NCBI GenBank assembly: GCA_907165135.1 | Contig: OU015568.1 | Coordinates: 9,734,001-9,798,000, forward strand | Direction: 5' to 3' | DNA from: Oikopleura dioica | Taxonomy: Eukaryota; Animalia; Chordata | DNA length: 64,000 nt | Shown here: piece after piece, positions 7,870-51,156 of the stretch | Layout of the letters: every line of letters begins with the position of its first letter | How positions within the stretch are numbered: position 1 is the stretch's first letter | The notes under the pieces: generated by a model | Told to the model about the DNA's origin: nothing | The model's input: only the letters and a program-made list of their open reading frames with translations | Database searches by the model: none | Translations under genes and position numbers: made by a program

Positions 7870-10800
7870 TTAAAAATGCTCATCCCAGCCAGACTCTTCA
7901 ATTGGCGTGTCTTTGTCGTCTTCATCCTTGAACTTGCCGAAGTTCGAATAATCGAATACATTCTTCAAATTTGGAATATTTGGCGCTAGTATCTTCTGAT
8001 TTTTGAGCGCTTCCCAGTCGAATCCTTCAAACCATTTGTGATTCTTGCGAATGCCATCGATTCCGCAACTTCCGTAACCAATTCGCTCACAGGGAGAAAG
8101 GTGACAGAGAGAACGAACAAGATGACCAGCGCGTTTAGAAATTGACGGGAAATGAAAATCGATGCTTACAGACAGCAGTTAACAGATGATTTTCGAGGAA
8201 ATTGTTACCTCTGTATTCCTTTCAGAGTGTTCTTGTAAATTTGTATATCAGTGTCTGCTGCAAAGGGCGTCGACTTGGTAAGAAGCTCGTAAATCAAAAT
8301 TCCAAGTGACCAAAAATCCGCAGCGTGATTGTGCCCAGCAGAAGTTATGATCTCCGGAGCAATGTATTCAGGAGTGCCACAGAAGGTCTAAAAATAAGCT
8401 TGCCAGAACTGATTGATTCTCACCCAAGTTTTTGTTCCTGCTGGAATTTGTTTAGCGAATCCAAGATCGACAAGTCTGACATATCCGTTTGAATCGAGTA
8501 GGAGATTTTCAGGCTTTAAATCCCTGTAGCAGATGAGTCGTTCATGAAGATAGCTGATAGCTTCGATGGCGCAGGCAGCGTAGAAACGAGCCACAGTGTC
8601 ACTTTTTGAGGATTTAGAATTAACATTAGAATGAGTCGACCTGAAATTATAATCCTCAACTGAAAGGTCCTTTTCTGATTAATAACGTGAGCAAATCTCC
8701 ACCAAGATAAACATCAGTCAAAAAGTAGACCATTCTTTTATCTTTGAAGCTCTTCAAAAGATAGGTAACAAATGGCGAGTTCATGGATTCGAGGAGTTTT
8801 CGTTCTTCTTGAATGTGCGGTTGATAATTTTCTTTTACGACCTCGATCTTTTTGATGCATTTTAGCGCAAAGCTTTTATGAGAAATGCCTGGGACTTTGA
8901 CCATCTTAATCGGACCAAAGGAGCCTCGTCCGATGACTTTAACGATCTTCAAGTCTTTCAGTTGAACCCGACGCACGAGCGGATTAATCACTCGTTTAAC
9001 TTCTTCCTCGACCGGTTCGTTTGCTTCCTTATGTTTCAAGTTGTCTAGGTGACCAATAAGTTGAACAAAATAATCACGTTCGAGTGAGTAGACGGTTACT
9101 TTCCCCAGAGCGTATACATTCGCCGCTCGAACCTCCTTCCTCAAAAGTGCGCGTTCTCCGAAGAAGTCTCCACGAGTGAGCTTGCTGACTACGCGTTCAG
9201 ATCCGTCTTTTTGATTGATAGTAACACTGCATTTTCCGGAACGAATGACATAAAATAAATCGCCCTGGTCACCTTGGCGAATAATTTGGTGTCCTGACTC
9301 AAAGATTTCCTCTTCTATGCATTCAACGAGCTTGGTCATCTGCAGCTTACTCAAATCTTTGAGAACATCGACGGAAGAAAGAAGCTTTCGCTTTTCTCTG
9401 TCTATTACAGTCGTTAATAGAATATAGAAAGATCTAATGCACCTTTAGATTGACCAGCAGATCTGATGGCATTCTGGAAGGTCTTTCTGTTGATGCTCCA
9501 AACATGGACATCATTTTCCGCCTCGACTTGAGCCGTCCTCATGCAATTATAGAGCAAAGCAACTTCCCCGAACAAAGCACCAGCTTCCATTGATGTAATG
9601 TAGAGTCCGTTCTTCATGACTTTCACGCTTCCAGAGATGAGAATGAACATGGTATTACCTTCGGTTCCTTCCACAATTATTTCAGATCCTTTGCAGTAAG
9701 CTTGCTTCTCGGCGCAATCGATTAAATTTGTGATTTGTTCTTCCTCAAGATTTTTGAAGAACTGCTGCTTCACCAAGATTTTCCTTAAAAACTTCTATGT
9801 TTCACCAAAAAAGAATCGGTACCTTAGAAAGTCGCTCTCATCTTGTGTTTTAGGGGCATTTGAATTCGCATCTTTCTGATGGACGATATCTACTCTTTCT
9901 CCAGAAATTCCTGATCGACTAAACATTTCCCGCTTCATTTTTAGTAGTGACTTATCCGGTGCTTCAGGTTCTTCTTCGTTCAACTGCTTTTTCGTCGCTA
10001 GCGTTACTCTGTACTTGTTGATTTCATCGTTGTAAGTGTTTTTGAGCTTTTGCAACTCGAATTGTAAAGCGTTATTCTTATCATCCCGTTTTTTGATAGC
10101 CTCTTGGTACTTTACTAATACAATACTTGACGAGCCCGATTCTTCACTCAACGTAGAATTGTACAGTTGAAGACGTGCTACTTCTGATTCTAGTTCTATA
10201 ATTTTCTTGGCTTGGCGGTCAATTCTCTTTTGCAACTCATCTTTGTCGTGCTTCATTTCGCGTATCTCTTCGTTGTGCATTTTGAAGATATCTCTTGTCC
10301 TAGCTTCGTAGTTGTTTATTTTTGCCTCCAGTGAATGAATCTTAAATATCAAAAATATTATCTGTCGGTCAAGATACCAATACCGTGGGCGAGAGATATC
10401 ACGACGGAGTCTGAGGGCCCGGGCCGGGGTTTTGAATATTTCGCGCACATTCAAGTATTTTCCCATGCCTGATGGAGGACTTTTATCTGGTGGAAGAAAC
10501 AATTGATGGAAGATAGGTCTAACCTAGACTCTTTAAGATTATTTAATCCTTTACTAATAAATAGATAATCATTTTAAAAAATCTTGATCATGTGACTCTT
10601 GGAGGACCCCTGGAGGACCTTTTCTGGTGGAAGACCGGCCTTCCTGGAAGACCCTTAAAATTCAGCCCCGTTCCATGATTTTTAAATTTAAGGGCTTGAC
10701 GGCCCTTCGGGCCGTCTCAGCCCCGTTCCATGATTTTTAAATTTAAGGGGCTTGACGGCCCTTCGGGCCGTCTCAGCCCCGTTCCATGATTTTTAAATTT

Positions 10801-13800
10801 AAGGGCTTGACGGCCCTTCGGGCCGTCTCAGCCCCGTTCCATGATTTTTAAATTTAAGGGCTTGACGGCCCTTCGGGCCGTCTCAGCCCCGTTCCATGAT
10901 TTTTAAATTTAAGGGGCTTGACGGCCCTTCGGGCCGTCTCAGCCCCGTTCCATGATTTTTAAATTTAAGGGCTTGACGGCCCTTCGGGCCGTCTCAGCCC
11001 CGTTCCATGATTTTTAAATTTAAGGGGCTTGACGGCCCTTCGGGCCGTCTCAGCCCCGTTCCATGATTTTTAAATTTAAGGGGCTTGACGGCCCTTCGGG
11101 CCGTCTCAGCCCCGTTCCATGATTTTTAAATTTAAGGGCTTGACGGCCCTTCGGGCCGTCTCAGCCCCGTTCCATGATTTTTAAATTTAAGGGCTTGACG
11201 GCCCTTCGGGCCGTCTCAGCCCCGTTCCATGATTTTTAAATTTAAGGGCTTGACGGCCCTTCGGGCCGTCTCAGCCCCGTTCCATGATTTTTAAATTTAA
11301 GGGCTTGACGGCCCTTCGGGCCGTCTCAGCCCCGTTCCATGATTTTTAAATTTAAGGGCTTGACGGCCCTTCGGGCCGTCTCAGCCCCGTTCCATGATTT
11401 TTAAATTTAAGGGCTTGACGGCCCTTCGGGCCGTCTCAGCCCCGTTCCATGATTTTTAAATTTAAGGGGCTTGACGGCCCTTCGGGCCGTCTCAGCCCCG
11501 TTCCATGATTTTTAAATTTAAGGGCTTGACGGCCCTTCGGGCCGTCTCAGCCCCGTTCCATGATTTTTAAATTTAAGGGGCTTGACGGCCCTTCGGGCCG
11601 TCTCAGCCCCGTTCCATGATTTTTAAATTTAAGGGCTTGACGGCCCTTCGGGCCGTCTCAGCCCCGTTCCATGATTTTTAAATTTAAGGGCTTGACGGCC
11701 CTTCGGGCCGTCTCAGCCCCGTTCCATGATTTTTAAATTTAAGGGCTTGACGGCCCTTCGGGCCGTCTCAGCCCCGTTCCATGATTTTTAAATTTAAGGG
11801 CTTGACGGCCCTTCGGGCCGTCTCAGCCCCGTTCCATGATTTTTAAATTTAAGGGGCTTGACGGCCCTTCGGGCCGTCTCAGCCCCGTTCCATGATTTTT
11901 AAATTTAAGGGCTTGACGGCCCTTCGGGCCGTCTCAGCCCCGTTCCATGATTTTTAAATTTAAGGGCTTGACGGCCCTTCGGGCCGTCTCAGCCCCGTTC
12001 CATGATTTTTAAATTTAAGGGCTTGACGGCCCTTCGGGCCGTCTCAGCCCCGTTCCATGATTTTTAAATTTAAGGGGCTTGACGGCCCTTCGGGCCGTCT
12101 CAGCCCCGTTCCATGATTTTTAAATTTAAGGGGCTTGACGGCCCTTCGGGCCGTCTCAGCCCCGTTCCATGATTTTTAAATTTAAGGGCTTGACGGCCCT
12201 TCGGGCCGTCTCAGCCCCGTTCCATGATTTTTAAATTTAAGGGCTTGACGGCCCTTCGGGCCGTCTCAGCCCCGTTCCATGATTTTTAAATTTAAGGGCT
12301 TGACGGCCCTTCGGGCCGTCTCAGCCCCGTTCCATGATTTTTAAATTTAAGGGCTTGACGGCCCTTCGGGCCGTCTCAGCCCCGTTCCATGATTTTTAAA
12401 TTTAAGGGCTTGACGGCCCTTCGGGCCGTCTCAGCCCCGTTCCATGATTTTTAAATTTAAGGGCTTGACGGCCCTTCGGGCCGTCTCAGCCCCGTTCCAT
12501 GATTTTTAAATTTAAGGGGCTTGACGGCCCTTCGGGCCGTCTCAGCCCCGTTCCATGATTTTTAAATTTAAGGGGCTTGACGGCCCTTCGGGCCGTCTCA
12601 GCCCCGTTCCATGATTTTTAAATTTAAGGGCTTGACGGCCCTTCGGGCCGTCTCAGCCCCGTTCCATGATTTTTAAATTTAAGGGCTTGACGGCCCTTCG
12701 GGCCGTCTCAGCCCCGTTCCATGATTTTTAAATTTAAGGGGCTTGACGGCCCTTCGGGCCGTCTCAGCCCCGTTCCATGATTTTTAAATTTAAGGGGCTT
12801 GACGGCCCTTCGGGCCGTCTCAGCCCCGTTCCATGATTTTTAAATTTAAGGGGCTTGACGGCCCTTCGGGCCGTCTCAGCCCCGTTCCATGATTTTTAAA
12901 TTTAAGGGCTTGACGGCCCTTCGGGCCGTCTCAGCCCCGTTCCATGATTTTTAAATTTAAGGGGCTTGACGGCCCTTCGGGCCGTCTCAGCCCCGTTCCA
13001 TGATTTTTAAATTTAAGGGCTTGACGGCCCTTCGGGCCGTCTCAGCCCCGTTCCATGATTTTTAAATTTAAGGGGCTTGACGGCCCTTCGGGCCGTCTCA
13101 GCCCCGTTCCATGATTTTTAAATTTAAGGGCTTGACGGCCCTTCGGGCCGTCTCAGCCCCGTTCCATGATTTTTAAATTTAAGGGCTTGACGGCCCTTCG
13201 GGCCGTCTCAGCCCCGTTCCATGATTTTTAAATTTAAGGGGCTTGACGGCCCTTCGGGCCGTCTCAGCCCCGTTCCATGATTTTTAAATTTAAGGGCTTG
13301 ACGGCCCTTCGGGCCGTCTCAGCCCCGTTCCATGATTTTTAAATTTAAGGGCTTGACGGCCCTTCGGGCCGTCTCAGCCCCGTTCCATGATTTTTAAATT
13401 TAAGGGGCTTGACGGCCCTTCGGGCCGTCTCAGCCCCGTTCCATGATTTTTAAATTTAAGGGGCTTGACAATGGCTGGGAACTCCGAGGTGATCAATCTC
13501 AGTCCCCAACCCCGCCCACACCCATCGTTTTTAAAATTCAAATTGATCAAGTTTTCAATTATTTTATGGTTTTGAATATATTTTATCAATTTAAAGATTT
13601 TCTTTGATTATTATTTACAAATTATTATTATTTAATTTATTTATTATTAAAACAAAATCAAAGTTATAAAAATTGAAGGAAGAAGAAGTTTCTTAGGTCA
13701 ATTATTGAGAGAGGTGAATTGTGAAAAATGTTTCTAGACGGGGGGTTGTTGTTGTTCTTCGCGGAGGACCCACTCCCACGTGGCGCAAGATGCGCGCCAA

Positions 13801-14426
13801 AAAGAGCAAAAAGATTGGGACGAGAAAAACACGCGCAAATGCCCCAATCTATTTCGCTCTCCGTCGTGAAATCTCTCGCCCACGGTACTCAAATCGGCAA
13901 GATCAGAATAGCAAATTAATTAATACAAGCTTTTTCCTATGTCGTCTCTGATTCGGGCGCGCCCAAAATAATTTACTGAGTTCAATTAGGAATTTGTCAA
14001 GGTGACCTGAAATAGAATCGAGGAAAAATTGTTTTCTCCTCCATGTTCTCAAAAATGAACTATTAGAGTGTAAATTTTTAAAGATCTGTTGACGTAGTCC
14101 GATGAAGAAGCTCTTTACTTCTCCAATTTTCAGTCATCGACCTGCTAAATAATGCAAATGTAATTACCTGATCCAAATACTTTTGATCTTTTCTGTTAGC
14201 CTTGAAGTTCCACTTTCCAAAGCTCATTTTCTTGCTTTTCTTTTCAAGAATATCCTTAATTGCAGTTTCTCCGTTCTGCCTTGATTGCCGATTGTCGCTG
14301 CCTACTGTAGCAGAGCAATTAATATGTCATTTCATGGAATTAGTCTCAGGAGGCAATCCGTTTTAATCTTATATTTCCAATTTTCCATGATGAGGAATTA
14401 CCTTTTTCTGCTCGACCCCGTAGCAT
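7870..14426 (-). CDS. PRKG: cGMP-dependent protein kinase (PKG), divergent; 5' exons at ~14.06-14.43 kb tentative
   Basis: Coiled coil, two CNB domains ([14 protein letters not shown]; [14 protein letters not shown]), kinase ([28 protein letters not shown]) and C-terminal ESGWDEHF* (stop 7870). The exon at ~10340 starts at an acceptor, so upstream exons must lie beyond the 10383-13885 element. Confidence 0.88.
10383..13885. mobile_element. Non-autonomous Tc1/mariner-superfamily (Tc2/pogo-like) TIR element carrying a satellite array
   Basis: 27 bp TIRs CCGTGGGCGAGAGAT(A/T)TCACGACGGAG at 10383-10409 and 13859-13885 (1 mismatch), flanked by TA at 10381-82 and 13886-87; no transposase ORF. Confidence 0.85.
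10662..13469. repeat. Tandem array of ~50.7 copies of a 55/56 bp hairpin-forming unit
   Basis: Unit cagccccgttccatgatttttaaatttaaggg(g)cttgacggcccttcgggccgtct; 50 full units (18 with G4, the rest G3) plus a partial unit; no other variation seen. Confidence 0.98.
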
Positions 14427-14696: not shown

Positions 14697-16959
14697 TCAC
14701 TCGTAATAACAGTTGAAGACGTCGAAGTAGCCGTCTTTGGCAGTTTTCTTGTTCAAGAATTTCGAAAATCGTAAGGTATCCGCATCGCGAAAAACTAACG
14801 ACAGCGAGTTTGCTTTTGGACACACTGTCAGTAGTTCCTCGTCTTCTCCTTTCGTAATATAGCTGACTGCACCGCCTTTCCCTACGTCCCAACCGTCTTG
14901 ATGCATTTCTAAACAGGACAACTAGCCAAGTTAATGACAAAATCGTTAGTTACCCGCAGATGCTTCTGAAAAGAAGTACATAAACATATCCAAACTGCCT
15001 CTTTCCTCCGTGTCAGCGTCATGCAAAAGCGTGTAGTTCCCGTGAGTCCACTTTCTAACTTGGCACCTGTACGCCCCTCCAGTAGGGGCCACTTCATCCT
15101 CTTCTTCTTCTTCCTCCTCGTCATCGACAGGAGCTTCCGGTGCAGCTTCAGTCCAGTCCAGTTAGACAGGAGCAGGAAGAAATGATCCGAAACAAGAAAT
15201 TTCATAAATTCTCCCAAAGCTGTCTTTTCTTCAAACATCTCTTTTTCGCCTAGTTCCAGCGTTAGTTTTCGCTGAAAAGGACCAGTTTCTTTGAAATCAC
15301 GGTTTTCCAAACACTCAAGAATCTCTTGATATTTTTGAGGGACCAAAATATCTTCGAGTTGAATTTCGGAGGTCTCTTCGAATTGGACCTTTAATTTTTG
15401 TTACTTCTTTTTGATCAAACACTTTCTCAAACCTGAATGTCGCCCATCGTATTGGGATCTAGGTAACGCATAGAAATCCATTCTTCTATTCTGTAATCGA
15501 CTGCATCGGGCAAGTTAAATTTCTTCAAGGTAAACTTTGGGGCGACGGGAACAACTCGCTCTCTTGGCGGAAGCGGGTCAGATGTGTGGAACCAGCCAGG
15601 GTGGCTATTTTGGATTTGGGGGTTAGTTGGAATTGGATTGGATCCAATCCAATAAAGTTTGGATGGAATTTGGATGGCCAGGGTACCGGATTTTGTTGGG
15701 GAAAATTGGGCAATTGGGGGAAATTGGGGAAATTGGATCCAATAAAAAATATATCTCTAAACTATGCAAAGTAGGGTCATTTTCATGATAAAAATGAACA
15801 ATCTCAGTTAAAAAAATCATTGTTTTGGCTCTGTTGATCCTCCTTTCGGAAAAAAACTTACTGTTTCATTTCTTTTCAAAGTACTAGAAGCCTTGGAAAA
15901 ATTGGAAACCCAATTGGATCCAATTGGAATTGGGGATTATTGGGGAATTGGGTAAAATTGGATTGGATTGGATTTTGGATGGATAGCTTCGACTCAAAAT
16001 TTATTGGATGGAAATTGGATGGCGAGACCCCGAAATTTTGTCCAAAATAGCCACCCTGGAACCAGCCACTGATGCTTTTTCGCACTTTAGAGCGGGAAGT
16101 CACTTCGCGTACTTGGTGAAATGAAGAATCCGTTACTTTGAAGAAGTTGAGGTAATTGCGGCGTGGCAACCATTCCTTATGCAGTCGCACAGGCTGACCC
16201 TGTTCATCGGAAACATAACTGTCGAAGAAACCACCGTCTTTCTCTACCCAGTCGTCGCTAAAACAACAATACATTAAGACACAAGTCTCAGGCAAAATCA
16301 ACCTGTTGAGATAATATACAAAGGCAACAACGCGATTTTCAAGGTCGTCCTCGTGAGGCAAGAGATGGTCCGTGTATTTGTACTCCGCGTAGAACATGCT
16401 CATATCGGTGATTTCATGCCCTGAAATAGCCGACATCAATGGCCACAAGTCCTTCATCAAGCCTCTGAAGCGAAAATTGAATGGTCAAGAAGAGCAGTGA
16501 TGCACAATACCTGAATTCAGACAGGCGTGGCAACTGATCAACCTCCGAAAGAGTCATCAACTCTTGACTTGAAAACGATTTCAGAAGAATCGAGATAAAA
16601 ATGATTGAATACCTTTGGCTAAATTGGTAGAGATCATTTTTCTTGAGCTTCAGTTCTAATTTCGCGCATTGATCTTCTAGCTCGCTGAGAGAAAAAGATG
16701 GCGAGCTCAGAAAATCGGAAAGCTGGCAAACTGGGAAGGGAGTGCTCTCGGCTGACAGCCAGTCGATTTCGTACTTGTCAAGCTCCCCTAAAACAGCTTT
16801 ACTCTTACCCATCAAAATTTAGCGACCTTGAAAGACTTGGCGAAGATACTCTGTTCTGGAGAGAAGTCCCTCTCTAGCTTGCAGTGGCTTTTTCGCGCGT
16901 TTCAAGTTCTCTTCCAACTCGTCCTCTTCTTCCTTCGTAACAACGCGTTTTTTACCCAT
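14697..16959 (-). CDS. OGFOD1: OGFOD1/Tpa1 ribosomal prolyl hydroxylase, interrupted by a MITE and an apparent frameshift
   Basis: LLPHEDDLENRVVAFVYYL, DWVEKDGG, SFHQVREV, RKSISGWF(H), LLLSNWTGLKLH, C-terminal EDEELLTVCPKANSLSLVFRD...YYE*. Confidence 0.9.
15597..16058. mobile_element. hAT-type MITE (462 bp) inserted in OGFOD1 coding sequence
   Basis: Perfect 18 bp TIRs CAGGGTGGCTATTTTGGA / TCCAAAATAGCCACCCTG; perfect 8 bp TSD GAACCAGC (15589-96, 16059-66); subterminal TTGGA/CCAAT repeats. Confidence 0.93.
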
Positions 16960-17057
16960 TAGACGCTGAGAAATTAACGATGAAGATATATTTTTAATTG
17001 CACTATTGGTTGGTTACAGAAAAAAGGAAGTGAAAGAAGATATCGTGAAAGAAAAAT

Positions 17058-46377: not shown

Positions 46378-49300
46378 TCATTTGAAGTTTTCAAGGCGAT
46401 CCAGCTCTGTTAGGTCTACGATCGGCTTTGATGTGCGCTGCGGGACGCTGGCGTCGGACTTTCTTCGCTGTGGCTTCGACAAGTGTCTCTCCATGTATCT
46501 GATACGGTGGTTCTTATTTTAAGCATTCGGATTGAAAGGAAGTAAGTTTCGAAATTTTATTTTTAGTTCAATGCCTCTTGAAATGCTTGCGTATTATCGT
46601 GGGGTGCCCGCGGGCGCTCAGGGCCTCTTTTGCTCATCAAAATTTAGGTCTTGGTGTTTGCGCATCAACAAAGCCAGAGTTCGAAATTTTTGCGGCTCCC
46701 GGGCAAGGGGGCGGCGGGCGGGCGGGCACGGGCAGAATATTTAAGATTCCCGAGGGCAAAAACGGTCACGGGCACAAAAACGAATTTTCCCGCGAGCCAA
46801 GCGGGCACGGGCACTATAATAAATTTTCCCGCGGGCAGATACGGGCACGGGCATGAATGAGAAGATTCCCGCGGGCATAAACGGGCACGGGCGGTTTGCC
46901 CGCGTTCCCGCACGAAATATTCCCGAGGGCAGCCCGGGGGAACATTTTTTTCTACTGCTAAATCTCAAGCATATTTTTCAAAATAAGAAAATAAAATAAA
47001 AACGACCCTTCGGATTTTTATATCGCAAGTTTTAGGGGCTAGTTAAAAACTACGACCGAATGGTCTCCGTTTCCCCAAGTTGGGCAAATGGCGACTTGGG
47101 CAAACGGCGATGTGAATTAATTAAATTGATTGATCATATAACTTTGTTGTATTGGCTTCTCCACAGCCAACCCCTGCTTCACCAACTTCAGTCCCGGCTT
47201 CAACAACTTCGATCCAAGCTTTTTAGAAATCAATGTTGGTGGCTCAAACGTCAACGGGATTCGCGTTGGAGAAGTCGTGATTGACGTCGAAGAACTCGGG
47301 ACTGACATTAGAGAAGCCATGATTGAAGTCGGTGAAGCTAGGATTGACGATGTAGACCCAGAATTGACGTTGGAAAAACCAAAATTGATATAATATTAAT
47401 GATAGTGGAGAAGACATGATTGAAGTTGGTGAAGCCAGGATTGGCGTTGAAGAATTCAGGATTCTCCGTTTGCTCAACTTGGGCAAACGGCGACTTGGGC
47501 AAACGGCGATGTGAATTAATTTAAATTGATTGATCATATAACTTTTATTGTCTTCTTCACAGTCAATCCCGGCTTCACTTATTTCAATCCCGGCTTCAAA
47601 AACTTCGATCCTAGCTTTTCAGACGTCAATCTTGGTGGCTCAAACTTGAATCCTGGCATCTCCAGCGCAGTGTTTGAAATAATGGTTAAAACTCTCGTGA
47701 GCGAGTGAGCGCGAGCAGAGGCCCTCAGAATTTTAACACGAGTGAGCGAGCGCGAGCAGACTCTTTTGATTTTTTCGTGAGCGAGCGAGCGCGAGCGCAG
47801 ATACCAGGATTTTTCTATGAGTGAGCAAGCGTGAGCGCTCCCTCGCTCGCTCGCGCTCACTCGCAGCTTTTCAACAACGTTTTCATTGAGTGATTTCTTG
47901 AAAAATTCTAGTACTTTCAAATTTGAAGGACTTTTAACTATCATAAGTTAATGATGTGTATTCTTACGAGATGAAAAGATAAAATCAAGATAGATTTCAT
48001 GAATATTAAATGATTTTGTCATGAGGGTGACTTCACTTAAAATAACCGTGAGCGAGCGCGAGTGAGTGCAAGCAGGGACCTTGGAATTTTATGGTGAGTG
48101 AGCGAGCGCGAGCAAAGGTTCTCGAGATCAACGTGAGTGAGTGAGCATGAGCGCTCGCTCACTCGCTCGCGCTCGCTCGTGGCTCGCGCTCACCATTTTT
48201 TCAAACACTGCTCCAGCGTCAATCCCGGCTTCTTCAATGCTGATCCGGGCGTCACTTACTTCAATCCAAGCTTCTCAAACGTCACTCCCGGCTTCTCAGT
48301 TGTCAATCATCGCTTCTCGAATGTCGATCATGGCTTCTTCAAGATAAAATTGGCGTTGAAAAAGCCGAGATGGAGATGGATGAAGCCGGGATCGACGTTG
48401 GAGAAGTCGGGATCGACGATGGAGAAATCGGGATTGACGTCGAAGAACCCGGGATGGACATTGGAGAAGCCATATTTGAAGTCGGTGAAGCGAGAATTGG
48501 CGATGGAGAAGCCATAATTGATATAGTGTCGATGATATTGGAGAAAACATGATTGATGTTGGTGAAGCCAGGATTGGCGTTGAAGAAGCCAGGATTGACA
48601 TTAAAAAAAGCCAAATAATGTCTAATGATCAATTAATATAAACTTTTTTCAGATCGCCGTTTGCCCAAGATCTCCGTTTCTCCAAGTTGGGCAAACGGCG
48701 ATTTGGGCAAAGAACTCTAGAGCAAAGAAGAAGACTACAGAACTCCACTTCCGGTCGATTCCAGAGCCGGAAATTGACGAAATTTAGTTAAAATGGTAGA
48801 GTGTGACCTATCAAATTGATGCTCAGAAGATTTCGAGTCATCCTAAAATCAATACTTCAGAAGAAACAGTCCCAAACCTGGTCAAACCGACCGTTAAAAT
48901 TATGTAAAAAAGGCATAAAGTGATGATTTTTTTTCACTTTTTTCCGGTTTATTTTACCGCGGTTGGTCTTGATTCTTGGTCTTAAATGATAGGAAATCGT
49001 CTGAGCATCAATTTGATAGGTCACACTTCACCATAACACCTAAATTACGTCAACTTCCGGCTCTAGAACCGACTGGAAGTGGAGTTTTCTAGAATTTTGA
49101 ACCGTTTAAGTTCTCAAAATTTTCTGTTGATTTGTAAAGGTATAATGTTCGGGGTTCTATAAGGCGGAAATGGGCTGGAAAACTTCGTTAACCTTAAAAA
49201 AAGCACGTCATAACAGTTTTGTATGCAGATTAGTTTTCAAAATACTCCCTCAAGTATTTGGTGTCTATTTCCACGCTATTTAAATGGTTTAACACTTTTT

Positions 49301-51156
49301 CATAAGGTGCATTGAATCTGCCCGTGCCCGTTTAAGCTCGCGGGAATCTTGCCCGTGCCCGAATTTGCCCGCGGGAATATTTTTTATTGTGCCCGTGCCC
49401 GCTTGGCCCGCGGGAAAATTCATTTTTTTGCCCGTGACCGCTTTTGCCCTCGGGAATCTTCACTTTCTTGCCCGTGCCCGTATCTTCCCCCGGGCAAACG
49501 CGGGATTTCGAACTCTGAACAAAGGTGTTGAAAACCACATGTTTCCCAAACAGAAAGTTCCCTTGACTTTTTGTTCATTGTTAGCGATTATGTAAGAACC
49601 AGTTCCTTGCTGTCGCGAGAGACATATCAGAGGAGTTGTGCAGGTTGAAAGTTTGATCCGGAGTTGACATGTACCGGTAGCGGCTTTGACTTCGTGAAGA
49701 AGGGGCAGAAGAAGGAGTCGGGACGCCGTATTTACGCGCTAGTTGGGCGCAAACACTCTCTTCTCCATATTGGCTGACGTGGTGAAGTTGGCCTTCTTTT
49801 CTAGTGCCGTAAGAGGGTGCGATATTTCGAATAAACATCGTGTCGCCTTCTGGATAATCCTCTTCATCGTCCTCGCTTGCAGATGAACTCGTAAAATGAT
49901 CTTAGGGTTCATTTACAAACTAAATAATTTGCCGTTCTTAACCATTACTAATTGGAGGAATATGATTAATAGCGGCCGGCGCAGTGGTATTCTGTTGTTG
50001 ATATCCTTGCTGCACCTCTTGCGGCTTATGCTCCTGATTGCAATTCGCAATGGTTTGATTCAGCTTTCCCACAAGTTCGGCCAGCGCTTCGGGCGGTAAT
50101 TCCGCGTCTGAAACTCGAAATTTGAAAAATCCGAGACAGCCGTATTGATTTCCAACCTGAGTCAGAATCTGTATCAGTGCTGTAGTGATTTGACTGACGA
50201 GAATGGGCGTTCGAGTAGTTCAAATTTGTCGAAGCCGCCAGGGATGTTTCTCGTGAACGCTCGTAGTACTGCATTTGAGAACTATTGGTGCTTTGTACTT
50301 GTGGCTGCTTGAAGACAAAACTGTCTGATGTCTGGATTGAGCATTCTTTTGTAGGTTGCTTTGAAGGTGCAGGGTCTGTTTGAGAAGAGGTTTCTTGAGA
50401 TGAAGATACTTCCGTGTTTGAAGATTTTTCTGCAGTTGAAGTTGTTAAAACTGTTTTTTGTTCTGATTCTGTTTTATATTTCTCGATTTCATCCTTGAGC
50501 TGTTGAATGATTTGCGCTTGCTGGGCAAGTTGACGAGTTTGCTTTTCGTTAGCTTTTTTATGTTTGTGAATTTCGAGCTCCTGGCTACGGATAGTCTCGA
50601 TGAGTTCCATTGTTCCGTTTGTCTGTGGGGAAGGAGAGGTCGGAGAAGGCGACTTTGGAACCGGAAAATAGTTGTCTTGGAATGAATTGTCTATTCATCA
50701 GGTGAATATTAAAAAGATCAAGTTTTTCAAATTCGAATCAGTTTCAATATATAGGATTCATTTATTTCTTTCACCTCTCCTAAGCGTTGGCAATTTGAGT
50801 TATTAGAGTTCTTAAGAATCGGCGTCAAAACTTCACTTTTCTCAAATGAAACTCGAAGCGGCTGTTTCAAATTAGCACTGGAGGCATTCTGAGTTGAGCT
50901 CAATCTGGCAACAGGAGTTGTCTCAACGGAATGGTCGACTGGCGGAGCGTGGAATGTACGCAAGTTTTCTGCACTGAACTCGGCTATCAGACTCGGCTCG
51001 GGTACTTTGCAACTGGTTTTGAAGAACTGCAAGTTTTTAAACTAACTACCACAGACTACCACTCTTCAACTTCAAAACTCTGCCTGTCAGTTCTAATCTA
51101 CTCATCCCAGATCTCTGCGTTGGCTGCGGTGATTTCACCGGCACAATTCCGTTCAT
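46378..51156 (-). CDS. Short STIL/Ana2/SAS-5-like centriole protein (tentative)
   Basis: Pro-rich PVPKSPSP, coiled coil EKQTRQLAQQAQIIQQLKDEIEK, STAN-like ESVCAQLARKYG, and SDMSLATAR|YMERHL across the last intron (compare STIL NMSFATKKYMKRY). Confidence 0.55.
47064..48712. repeat. Foldback-like tandem units of degenerate ~21 bp repeats in both orientations
   Basis: Unit head tctccgtt...cttgggcaaacggcga recurs at 47064, 47463 and 48671; left arms carry tcaatcccggcttc repeats, right arms gaagcc(g/a)ggattga; inverted head at ~48625-48670. Confidence 0.7.
47668..48210. mobile_element. hAT-type MITE (543 bp) nested in the foldback unit
   Basis: 19 bp TIR CAGTGTTTGAAA(T/A)AATGGT; perfect 8 bp TSD CTCCAGCG (47660-67, 48211-18); subterminal GAGCGAGCGCGAGC repeats in inverted orientation. 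Confidence 0.92.
48739..49209. mobile_element. Long-TIR MITE, left-truncated relative of the 52420-52993 element
   Basis: ~110 bp internal inverted arms (acttccggtc...gtgtgacctatcaaattgatgctcag) and the same right terminus ccttaaaaaaagcacgtc. Confidence 0.75.

Follow-up and report, generated by a model that had tools for sequence, protein, structure and literature searches.

A transposon-like element with TA duplications and a hairpin satellite interior at a protein kinase locus of Oikopleura dioica

In a 64,000-nucleotide stretch of the Oikopleura dioica genome (GenBank assembly GCA_907165135.1, contig OU015568.1, positions 9,734,001 to 9,798,000 of the forward strand; hereafter the window, in whose coordinates positions are given), a PKG-like kinase gene on the minus strand adjoins a tandem array of short hairpin-forming units enclosed by a pair of terminal inverted repeats (TIRs). 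The locus raises the question of whether this arrangement is a mobile element, whether the satellite travelled with it, and where it stands in the kinase gene. A preliminary description, made from the letters of the window, had read it as a TA-duplicating transposon that delivers satellite sequence and had placed it in an intron of the gene. We find that the entire 3505 bp (both arms, the array, and a single TA) was inserted at this site and that no other sample whose sequence crosses the junction has it. Very probably, it is a cut-and-paste DNA transposon of Tc1/mariner type, TA-duplicating and non-autonomous, whose interior consists of a 55-bp hairpin satellite; the superfamily is assigned from the target-site duplication and the TIRs only.

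An inverted-repeat search returned two TIRs of 27 nt each that match at 26 of 27 positions and are flanked by TA on both sides. With TA included, the inverted arms (10381-10409 and 13859-13887) are 29 nt long and 97% complementary, and the span from TIR to TIR (10383-13885) is 3503 bp. The 27-nt TIR occurs only twice within the window, while none was expected in 100 shuffles, which rules out a chance pairing; neither arm has a further copy there. No open reading frame (ORF) of more than 76 amino acids overlaps the element, and no transposase-like frame was recognized among the window ORFs of at least 180 amino acids, which were judged by eye without a Pfam scan. Rfam returned no match for the element or for its two relatives L005 and L006 (see below). 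The layout given in the preliminary description, with TA-flanked 27-nt TIRs around 3503 bp of which 2808 bp are array and without an ORF, was thus confirmed throughout. The same description had suggested that short arm repeats may be transposase-binding sites. Four of the eight occurrences of GGAGGAC in the window sit in the arms, and all four have the same orientation instead of being arranged as an inverted pair at the ends. A role as symmetric transposase-binding sites was therefore rejected.

The array (10662-13469, 2808 bp) has a period of 55, 50.7 copies, and 99% matches as measured by TRF, its length being that of the assembly. Just two unit variants are found, one of 55 bp (n = 32) and one of 56 bp (n = 18) in which GGG has become GGGG, followed by a final 40-nt partial unit; the variants follow no higher-order pattern, and the units are otherwise without differences. 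Each unit consists of a 40-nt part and then a 15-16-nt hairpin core. As single-stranded DNA it folds into an 8-bp stem with a 3-nt loop, and the stem reaches 13 bp when read across the unit boundary (-15.2 kcal/mol, z = -5.1, DNA free energy). The AT-rich part of the unit contains a perfect 10-bp palindrome, TTAAATTTAA. Both boundaries of the array coincide with hairpin edges. In local alignments, about 80 nt at the start of the right arm (13470-13548) align in register with one unit, an alignment equalled by 4 of 1000 shuffles (p ~0.004), and no significant similarity to the unit was found in the left arm.

The mobility of the element was assessed by comparing contigs of three DNA data sets (X1 and X3, which come from two other sequencing studies, and X7) with the left junction region, 9400-10700. 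A 1133-nt contig of X1 tracks the left flank as far as 10383 and continues for another 255 letters, which open with the right flank from 13889, a match read from the 30-letter consensus shown. A 770-nt contig of X3 shows the same flank-TA-flank join. The junction-spanning contigs are unbroken, with mean depths of 118 (X1) and 101.1 (X3) that are like those of single-copy flank, and the X1 and X3 samples appear to be without the insertion at this site. In X7, two contigs depart at 10382/10383 without entering the TIR; their further letters were not displayed. In addition, a profile-free protein search with the coiled-coil exon of the kinase gene reached two ENA metagenome contigs, L001 and L002, which match the window, once the sequences on either side of the element are joined at one TA, over 1673 gap-free nt with 97.25% identity. 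These two contigs differ at 2 of 2447 aligned positions and were counted as one sample, a single contig represented in two assemblies.

Given that the empty sites are precise and carry a single TA, the TA is a true target-site duplication. The preliminary claim of a mobile, TA-duplicating TIR element is borne out by X1, X3, and L001/L002, and the single-TA alleles it had proposed to look for were found in these other samples. An element inserted around an older array is ruled out, because the empty sites lack the arms and the array together. For the same reason, the unit sequence came in with the element. The insertion is recent, the site being empty in every other data set read across the junction.

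Other copies of the element were found. The preliminary description had expected the TIR to be bound to other flanks, and this was seen in both X3 and X7. In X3, foreign sequence meets the TA and TIR at 10381 in two contigs and at 10379 in another two; one X7 contig, 266 nt long, consists of 41 foreign letters followed by the TA, the TIR, and the arm to 10605. X3 also contains a second type of junction between array and right arm, where the hairpin is joined to the right arm through GGG microhomology. Real sequences of further copies were sought with the spurious ORFs that read out of the element. The right-end ORF led through P0004 to L005, a Tara Oceans contig that contains 187 nt of the right end at 83% identity, a TIR matching at 25 of 27 positions, the TA, and a new flank. 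The L005 interior (574 nt) is different from that of the window element and has no tandem repeat; L005 holds the end of a diverged subfamily. An ORF spanning the array/right-arm junction led through P0005 to L006, a contig of the same Tara assembly. It contains the left arm from 10538 to 10661 (L006:1-124) at 92.7% identity and then a single partial unit of 40 nt; the complete right arm comes next, followed by a TIR identical at 27 of 27 positions, the TA, and a new flank.

Compared with the window element with its array collapsed, L006 is 95.7% identical over 578 nt, and the arm/unit junctions are letter-for-letter identical on both sides. Unit number was predicted to vary between copies, and it does: 0.7 units in L006 and 50.7 in the window stand between the same arms and the same junctions. 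The one-unit form in L006 does not have the 16-nt hairpin core. A 54-nt block near the right end (13721-13774) is invariant in the window, L006, and L005, although L005 is otherwise 83% identical. This block is conserved better than the TIR itself, and it has no inverted counterpart in the left arm. Searches with the TIR and unit patterns gave 0 matches each in JGI metagenome contigs and 0 matches in IMG/VR, and the ORF that reads outward from the left end had no relatives in a word search.

The L006 flank carries the 40-nt O. dioica spliced leader at 888-927, followed by GTAAG (spliced-leader sequence from PMC6883708), and thereby ties the element family to O. dioica. The L006 copy is located about 300 nt upstream of the O. 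dioica spliced-leader RNA gene (region L006:580-972). By eye, the first ~45 nt of its flank after the TA resemble the 3′ part of 5S rRNA; there was no Rfam match. The right flanks of the two insertions are also alike, with 9 of 12 letters identical between window 13886-13897 (TACTCAAATCGG) and L006:580-591 (TACTTACATGGG). This likeness, which comes from two sites only and is not shared by L005, may reflect a preference for target letters besides the TA.

Units greatly outnumber arms. Over the left arm, contig depths summed to 940-2150 in X1 against a flank of 118 and 530-1670 in X3 against a flank of 91, or ~6-18 times flank, while depth over the first unit reached 300,000-750,000 in X1 (~2,500-6,400 times flank) and 166,000-425,000 in X3 (~1,800-4,700 times flank); ratios from summed contig depths are rough, giving orders of magnitude and not copy numbers. 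They correspond to about ten arm copies and some thousands of units per genome, as an order of magnitude only. The unit is a major satellite, given that its depth is thousands of times that of the flank. Since unit depth is also hundreds of times arm depth, most units are probably located outside elements of this family. The preliminary description had named arrays of the unit without these TIRs as a result that would tell against it, and the same depth difference suggests that such arrays may exist in part. In X7, units are found that have foreign sequence on their left; none of the sequences read was itself a free array. In X7, a marine metagenome, the ratio of unit to flank depth is only ~100, compared with thousands in X1 and X3, and a hairpin loop variant in which TTC has become TTT is well represented. 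Satellite load and variants may differ between populations.

Among eukaryotic DNA transposons, duplication of a 2-bp TA characterizes the Tc1/mariner/pogo superfamily. The window element shows this duplication together with TIRs, and the family is present at multiple loci, with the copies in L005, L006, X3, and X7 also abutting TA. The mark of the pogo/Tc2 subgroup would be a pogo-type transposase (DDE_1 with a CENP-B-like DNA-binding domain); the preliminary description had read this subgroup from the CCGT termini, an assignment that found no support. A central array between conserved arms, with a copy number that goes down to one partial unit, also places it with the tandem-repeat-containing MITEs (miniature inverted-repeat transposable elements). 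A foldback or Tetris-type element was rejected because the inverted stretch is limited to 27-29 nt and the array is in a single orientation, and a Helitron/Helentron was rejected because a TIR and a TA duplication are present.

Comparison with known systems points to miDNA4 of Xenopus tropicalis (Scalvenzi and Pollet 2014) as the closest known analogue. As summarized in reviews, miDNA4 is a Tc1/mariner MITE with an internal satellite (PMC12628747, PMC9659126). In these accounts it is likewise a TA-type non-autonomous TIR element; it contains either a single satellite monomer or an array in which the number of copies varies, and satellites are proposed to disperse through it and then to turn into classical arrays (PMC12628747, PMC9659126). 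As far as these accounts describe it, miDNA4 differs in its host phylum and its unrelated sequence, whereas the O. dioica element has a unit with a 13-bp hairpin and an AT-rich palindrome, ~50 identical units (2.8 kb), and a 65-70-Mb host genome, and its insertion polymorphism is shown by precise empty sites. DTC84 and other pearl-type MITEs of bivalves resemble it in that their arms form a cassette enclosing a central array, the copy number of which varies, and the palindrome at the DTC84 unit junction has been proposed as a hot spot of array length change (PMC3879986). In DTC84, the core repeats number five at most, a microsatellite forms the tail, and the duplication is a putative AA (PMC3879986); the O. 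dioica element lacks a microsatellite, has a 27-nt TIR, and duplicates TA, and its units are ten times as many. Tetris, a foldback-type element of Drosophila virilis, is also a DNA transposon from whose internal tandem repeats a satellite arose (PMC4079207), but its repeats lie within long TIRs, unlike the short TIRs and the one central, single-orientation array found here. Finally, oyster Helitrons/Helentrons share conserved ends with a satellite array between them, and the oyster arrays occur both inside and outside elements (PMC8268682, PMC12628747), but they have neither the TIRs nor the target duplication present in the O. dioica element. A literature search for O. dioica satellites or elements of this kind found no description. 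The O. dioica element is thus a new example of a known transposon-satellite partnership and not a new kind of element.

These observations suggest how the element may have reached its present form. A transposase supplied in trans from elsewhere would cut at the 27-nt TIR ends, and integration duplicated a TA in the likely 319-nt first intron of the PKG-like gene, enlarging that intron to 3824 nt. Family members keep the same arm/array junctions and differ in their units, from one 40-nt part to ~50 units. With an array built as (40-nt part + hairpin core) x 50 and then a 40-nt part, any two of the 40-nt parts could take part in exchange or slippage, which would remove whole units, and full collapse would give the L006 form. 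The array presumably grows and shrinks by replication slippage or unequal exchange aided by the hairpins, and we infer hairpin-stalled replication as the driver, because both array boundaries fall at hairpin edges. The junction palindrome of the bivalve DTC84 has been proposed to play the same role in length change (PMC3879986). With regard to the origin of the satellite, the element would carry as cargo part of a satellite that is spread through the genome, and the array edge would preserve older, degenerate units as fossils. Cargo is the most likely origin because units are so much more numerous genome-wide than arms. Every transposition could then plant the satellite at a new euchromatic site.

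Some observations weigh against this account. So far, the filled allele is known from no assembly other than that of the window; searches turned up no element that combines this TIR with a transposase, the host genome itself not being searchable by DNA; and the absence of the 16-nt hairpin core from the one-unit form fits collapse and capture alike. The first of these would also be expected if the array length or the whole insertion were an assembly artefact, given that X1, X3, and L001/L002 do not show the filled allele, that long-read assemblies are prone to errors in tandem-array length, and that a GGG/GGGG difference is a typical homopolymer error. However, misassembly creates no TA duplication with an inverted-repeat pair matching at 26 of 27 positions, the same arm/unit junctions recur in the independent Tara contig L006, and contigs of other runs contain both the GGG and the GGGG unit variants (near 10694), so that an artefact is very improbable. 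The one-unit form of L006 admits two further explanations. In one, the element arrived with one or a few units and the 50-unit array expanded in place, long arrays not being what transposes. The units are indeed identical save for GGG/GGGG while the arms differ by 4-7% from L006, but identical units are equally expected from homogenization in a donor copy, and an insertion that appears very young leaves little time for 50 rounds of growth; we regard expansion in place as possible but doubtful. In the other, the satellite was born inside the element family by duplication and expansion of an arm-internal segment, and the genome-wide satellite descends from elements, as in models proposed for MITEs and satellites of Xenopus (PMC12628747, PMC9659126). 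The register between the first ~80 nt of the right arm and the unit, the identical junctions of the one-unit form, and the variant X3 junction at GGG microhomology are consistent with such a birth. Against it, the one-unit form lacks the 16-nt core, so that its simple duplication could not yield the unit; units exceed arms hundreds of times in depth; and the left arm has no significant similarity to the unit. A birth inside the family therefore seems rather unlikely, and cargo with fossil units at its edge is weakly favoured over it.

Where the element sits in the kinase gene allows two readings as well. The minus-strand gene that adjoins it encodes two cNMP_binding domains and a Pkinase domain, and the exon nearest to the element, the N-terminal coiled-coil exon, has its acceptor AG just upstream of its first coding base, 10343. 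In L003, a contig from a diverged relative (54% protein identity), the acceptor is at the same place; the first five residues, IHSLE, are kept through two synonymous changes (TCT TTG versus TCA CTG), the residues that follow change conservatively, and the frame is open in both lineages. Because the acceptor, IHSLE, and the open frame are all kept in L003, the region before the first in-exon Met behaves as coding. The donor of a candidate first coding exon on the far side of the element is kept in L001:1-12, and its phase 0 matches the phase-0 acceptor; the predicted first intron between them would measure 319 nt in the empty allele but 3824 nt in the filled one. Judged from these splice sites and frames, the element probably lies inside the first intron of PKG. 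The adjacency to PKG stands, whereas the intron placement given in the preliminary description is probable but not proven. RNA run X18 lends it no support, having given 0 reads on 9400-10700, a result that bears on neither splicing nor expression. It is unlikely, though worth weighing, that the element instead lies outside the PKG coding region, in an outron or the 5′ flank, with trans-splicing at the AG at 10344 and a start at Met 10280. Many O. dioica mRNAs are trans-spliced (PMC6883708), ORF callers start the protein at Met 10280 (P0001), and candidate exon 1 is a prediction from the sequence. Against an outron stand the frame that is open from the acceptor in both the window and L003, IHSLE kept through synonymous changes with conservative changes after it, and an ATG exon with a CAG/GTAATT donor in matching phase 319 nt upstream in the empty allele.

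The median intron of O. dioica is ~49 nt (PMC8008620). Without the element, the predicted PKG first intron (10344-14167) is, at 319 nt, several times longer than this median, and it may hold regulatory sequence if exon 1 is right. An OGFOD1-like gene is located directly upstream of PKG on the same (minus) strand (14697-16960) and ends at about 14697. The features of the element and of the adjoining gene are listed in the table.

Table. Features of the satellite-bearing element and of the adjoining PKG-like gene, in window coordinates.
Feature	Position	Strand	Remarks
PKG-like open frame with coiled-coil/autoinhibitory exon	9798..10343	-	9798 is the open-frame end, not a mapped 3′ donor
Left TA of target-site duplication	10381..10382	.	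Single TA at empty sites
Left TIR, 27 nt	10383..10409	+	26/27 versus right TIR; no other window copy
Left arm, 252 nt, non-coding	10410..10661	+	Direct sub-repeats GGAGGAC..CTGGTGGAAGA at 10474 and 10612
Tandem array	10662..13469	+	50 full 55/56-bp units, then a 40-nt partial unit
Degenerate unit, in array register, opening the right arm	13470..13548	+	4/1000 shuffles as good
Right arm, 389 nt, non-coding, AT-rich middle	13470..13858	+	95.9% to L006; last 187 nt 83% to L005
54-nt subterminal block, candidate cis element, contains GGAGGACCC	13721..13774	+	Invariant alignment columns 42-95
Right TIR, 27 nt	13859..13885	-	27/27 in L006, 25/27 in L005
Right TA of target-site duplication	13886..13887	.	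Single TA at empty sites
Candidate first coding exon of PKG, 20 codons, ATG	14168..14227	-	CAG/GTAATT donor, phase 0

The window contains another repeat element, a foldback-like one at 46722-49498. Its inverted arms of ~135-170 nt are 89% complementary and are built of ~40-nt sub-repeats rich in GCCCGTGCCCG, and its interior of ~2.5 kb is full of 21-nt repeats in both orientations.

The idea of a mobile satellite-delivery element gains from the empty sites, the second copy, and the variable unit number, whereas its extension to the seeding of heterochromatin or centromeres found no evidence. The genome paper on O. dioica from Okinawa reported 1.4-2.6 Mb of tandem repeats and identified no centromeric repeat (PMC8008620). 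That the 55-bp hairpin unit is the missing (peri)centromeric satellite of O. dioica is improbable. If it were, transposons of the TA type and others would be vehicles that seed and renew a centromeric satellite, and the turnover of centromere repeats by transposition would become directly testable in a 65-70-Mb chordate genome.

Given the clean polymorphism between filled and empty sites, our findings indicate that a DNA transposon family has been very recently active in one of the most compact animal genomes. Such an element can place ~2.8 kb of structured satellite in the probable 5′ intron of a gene in a species whose median intron is ~49 nt (PMC8008620). It provides a concrete O. dioica case of the link between transposons and satellites that is known from frogs, bivalves, and flies, and the unit is, because of its abundance, a candidate probe for the still unassembled repeat-rich regions of the genome.

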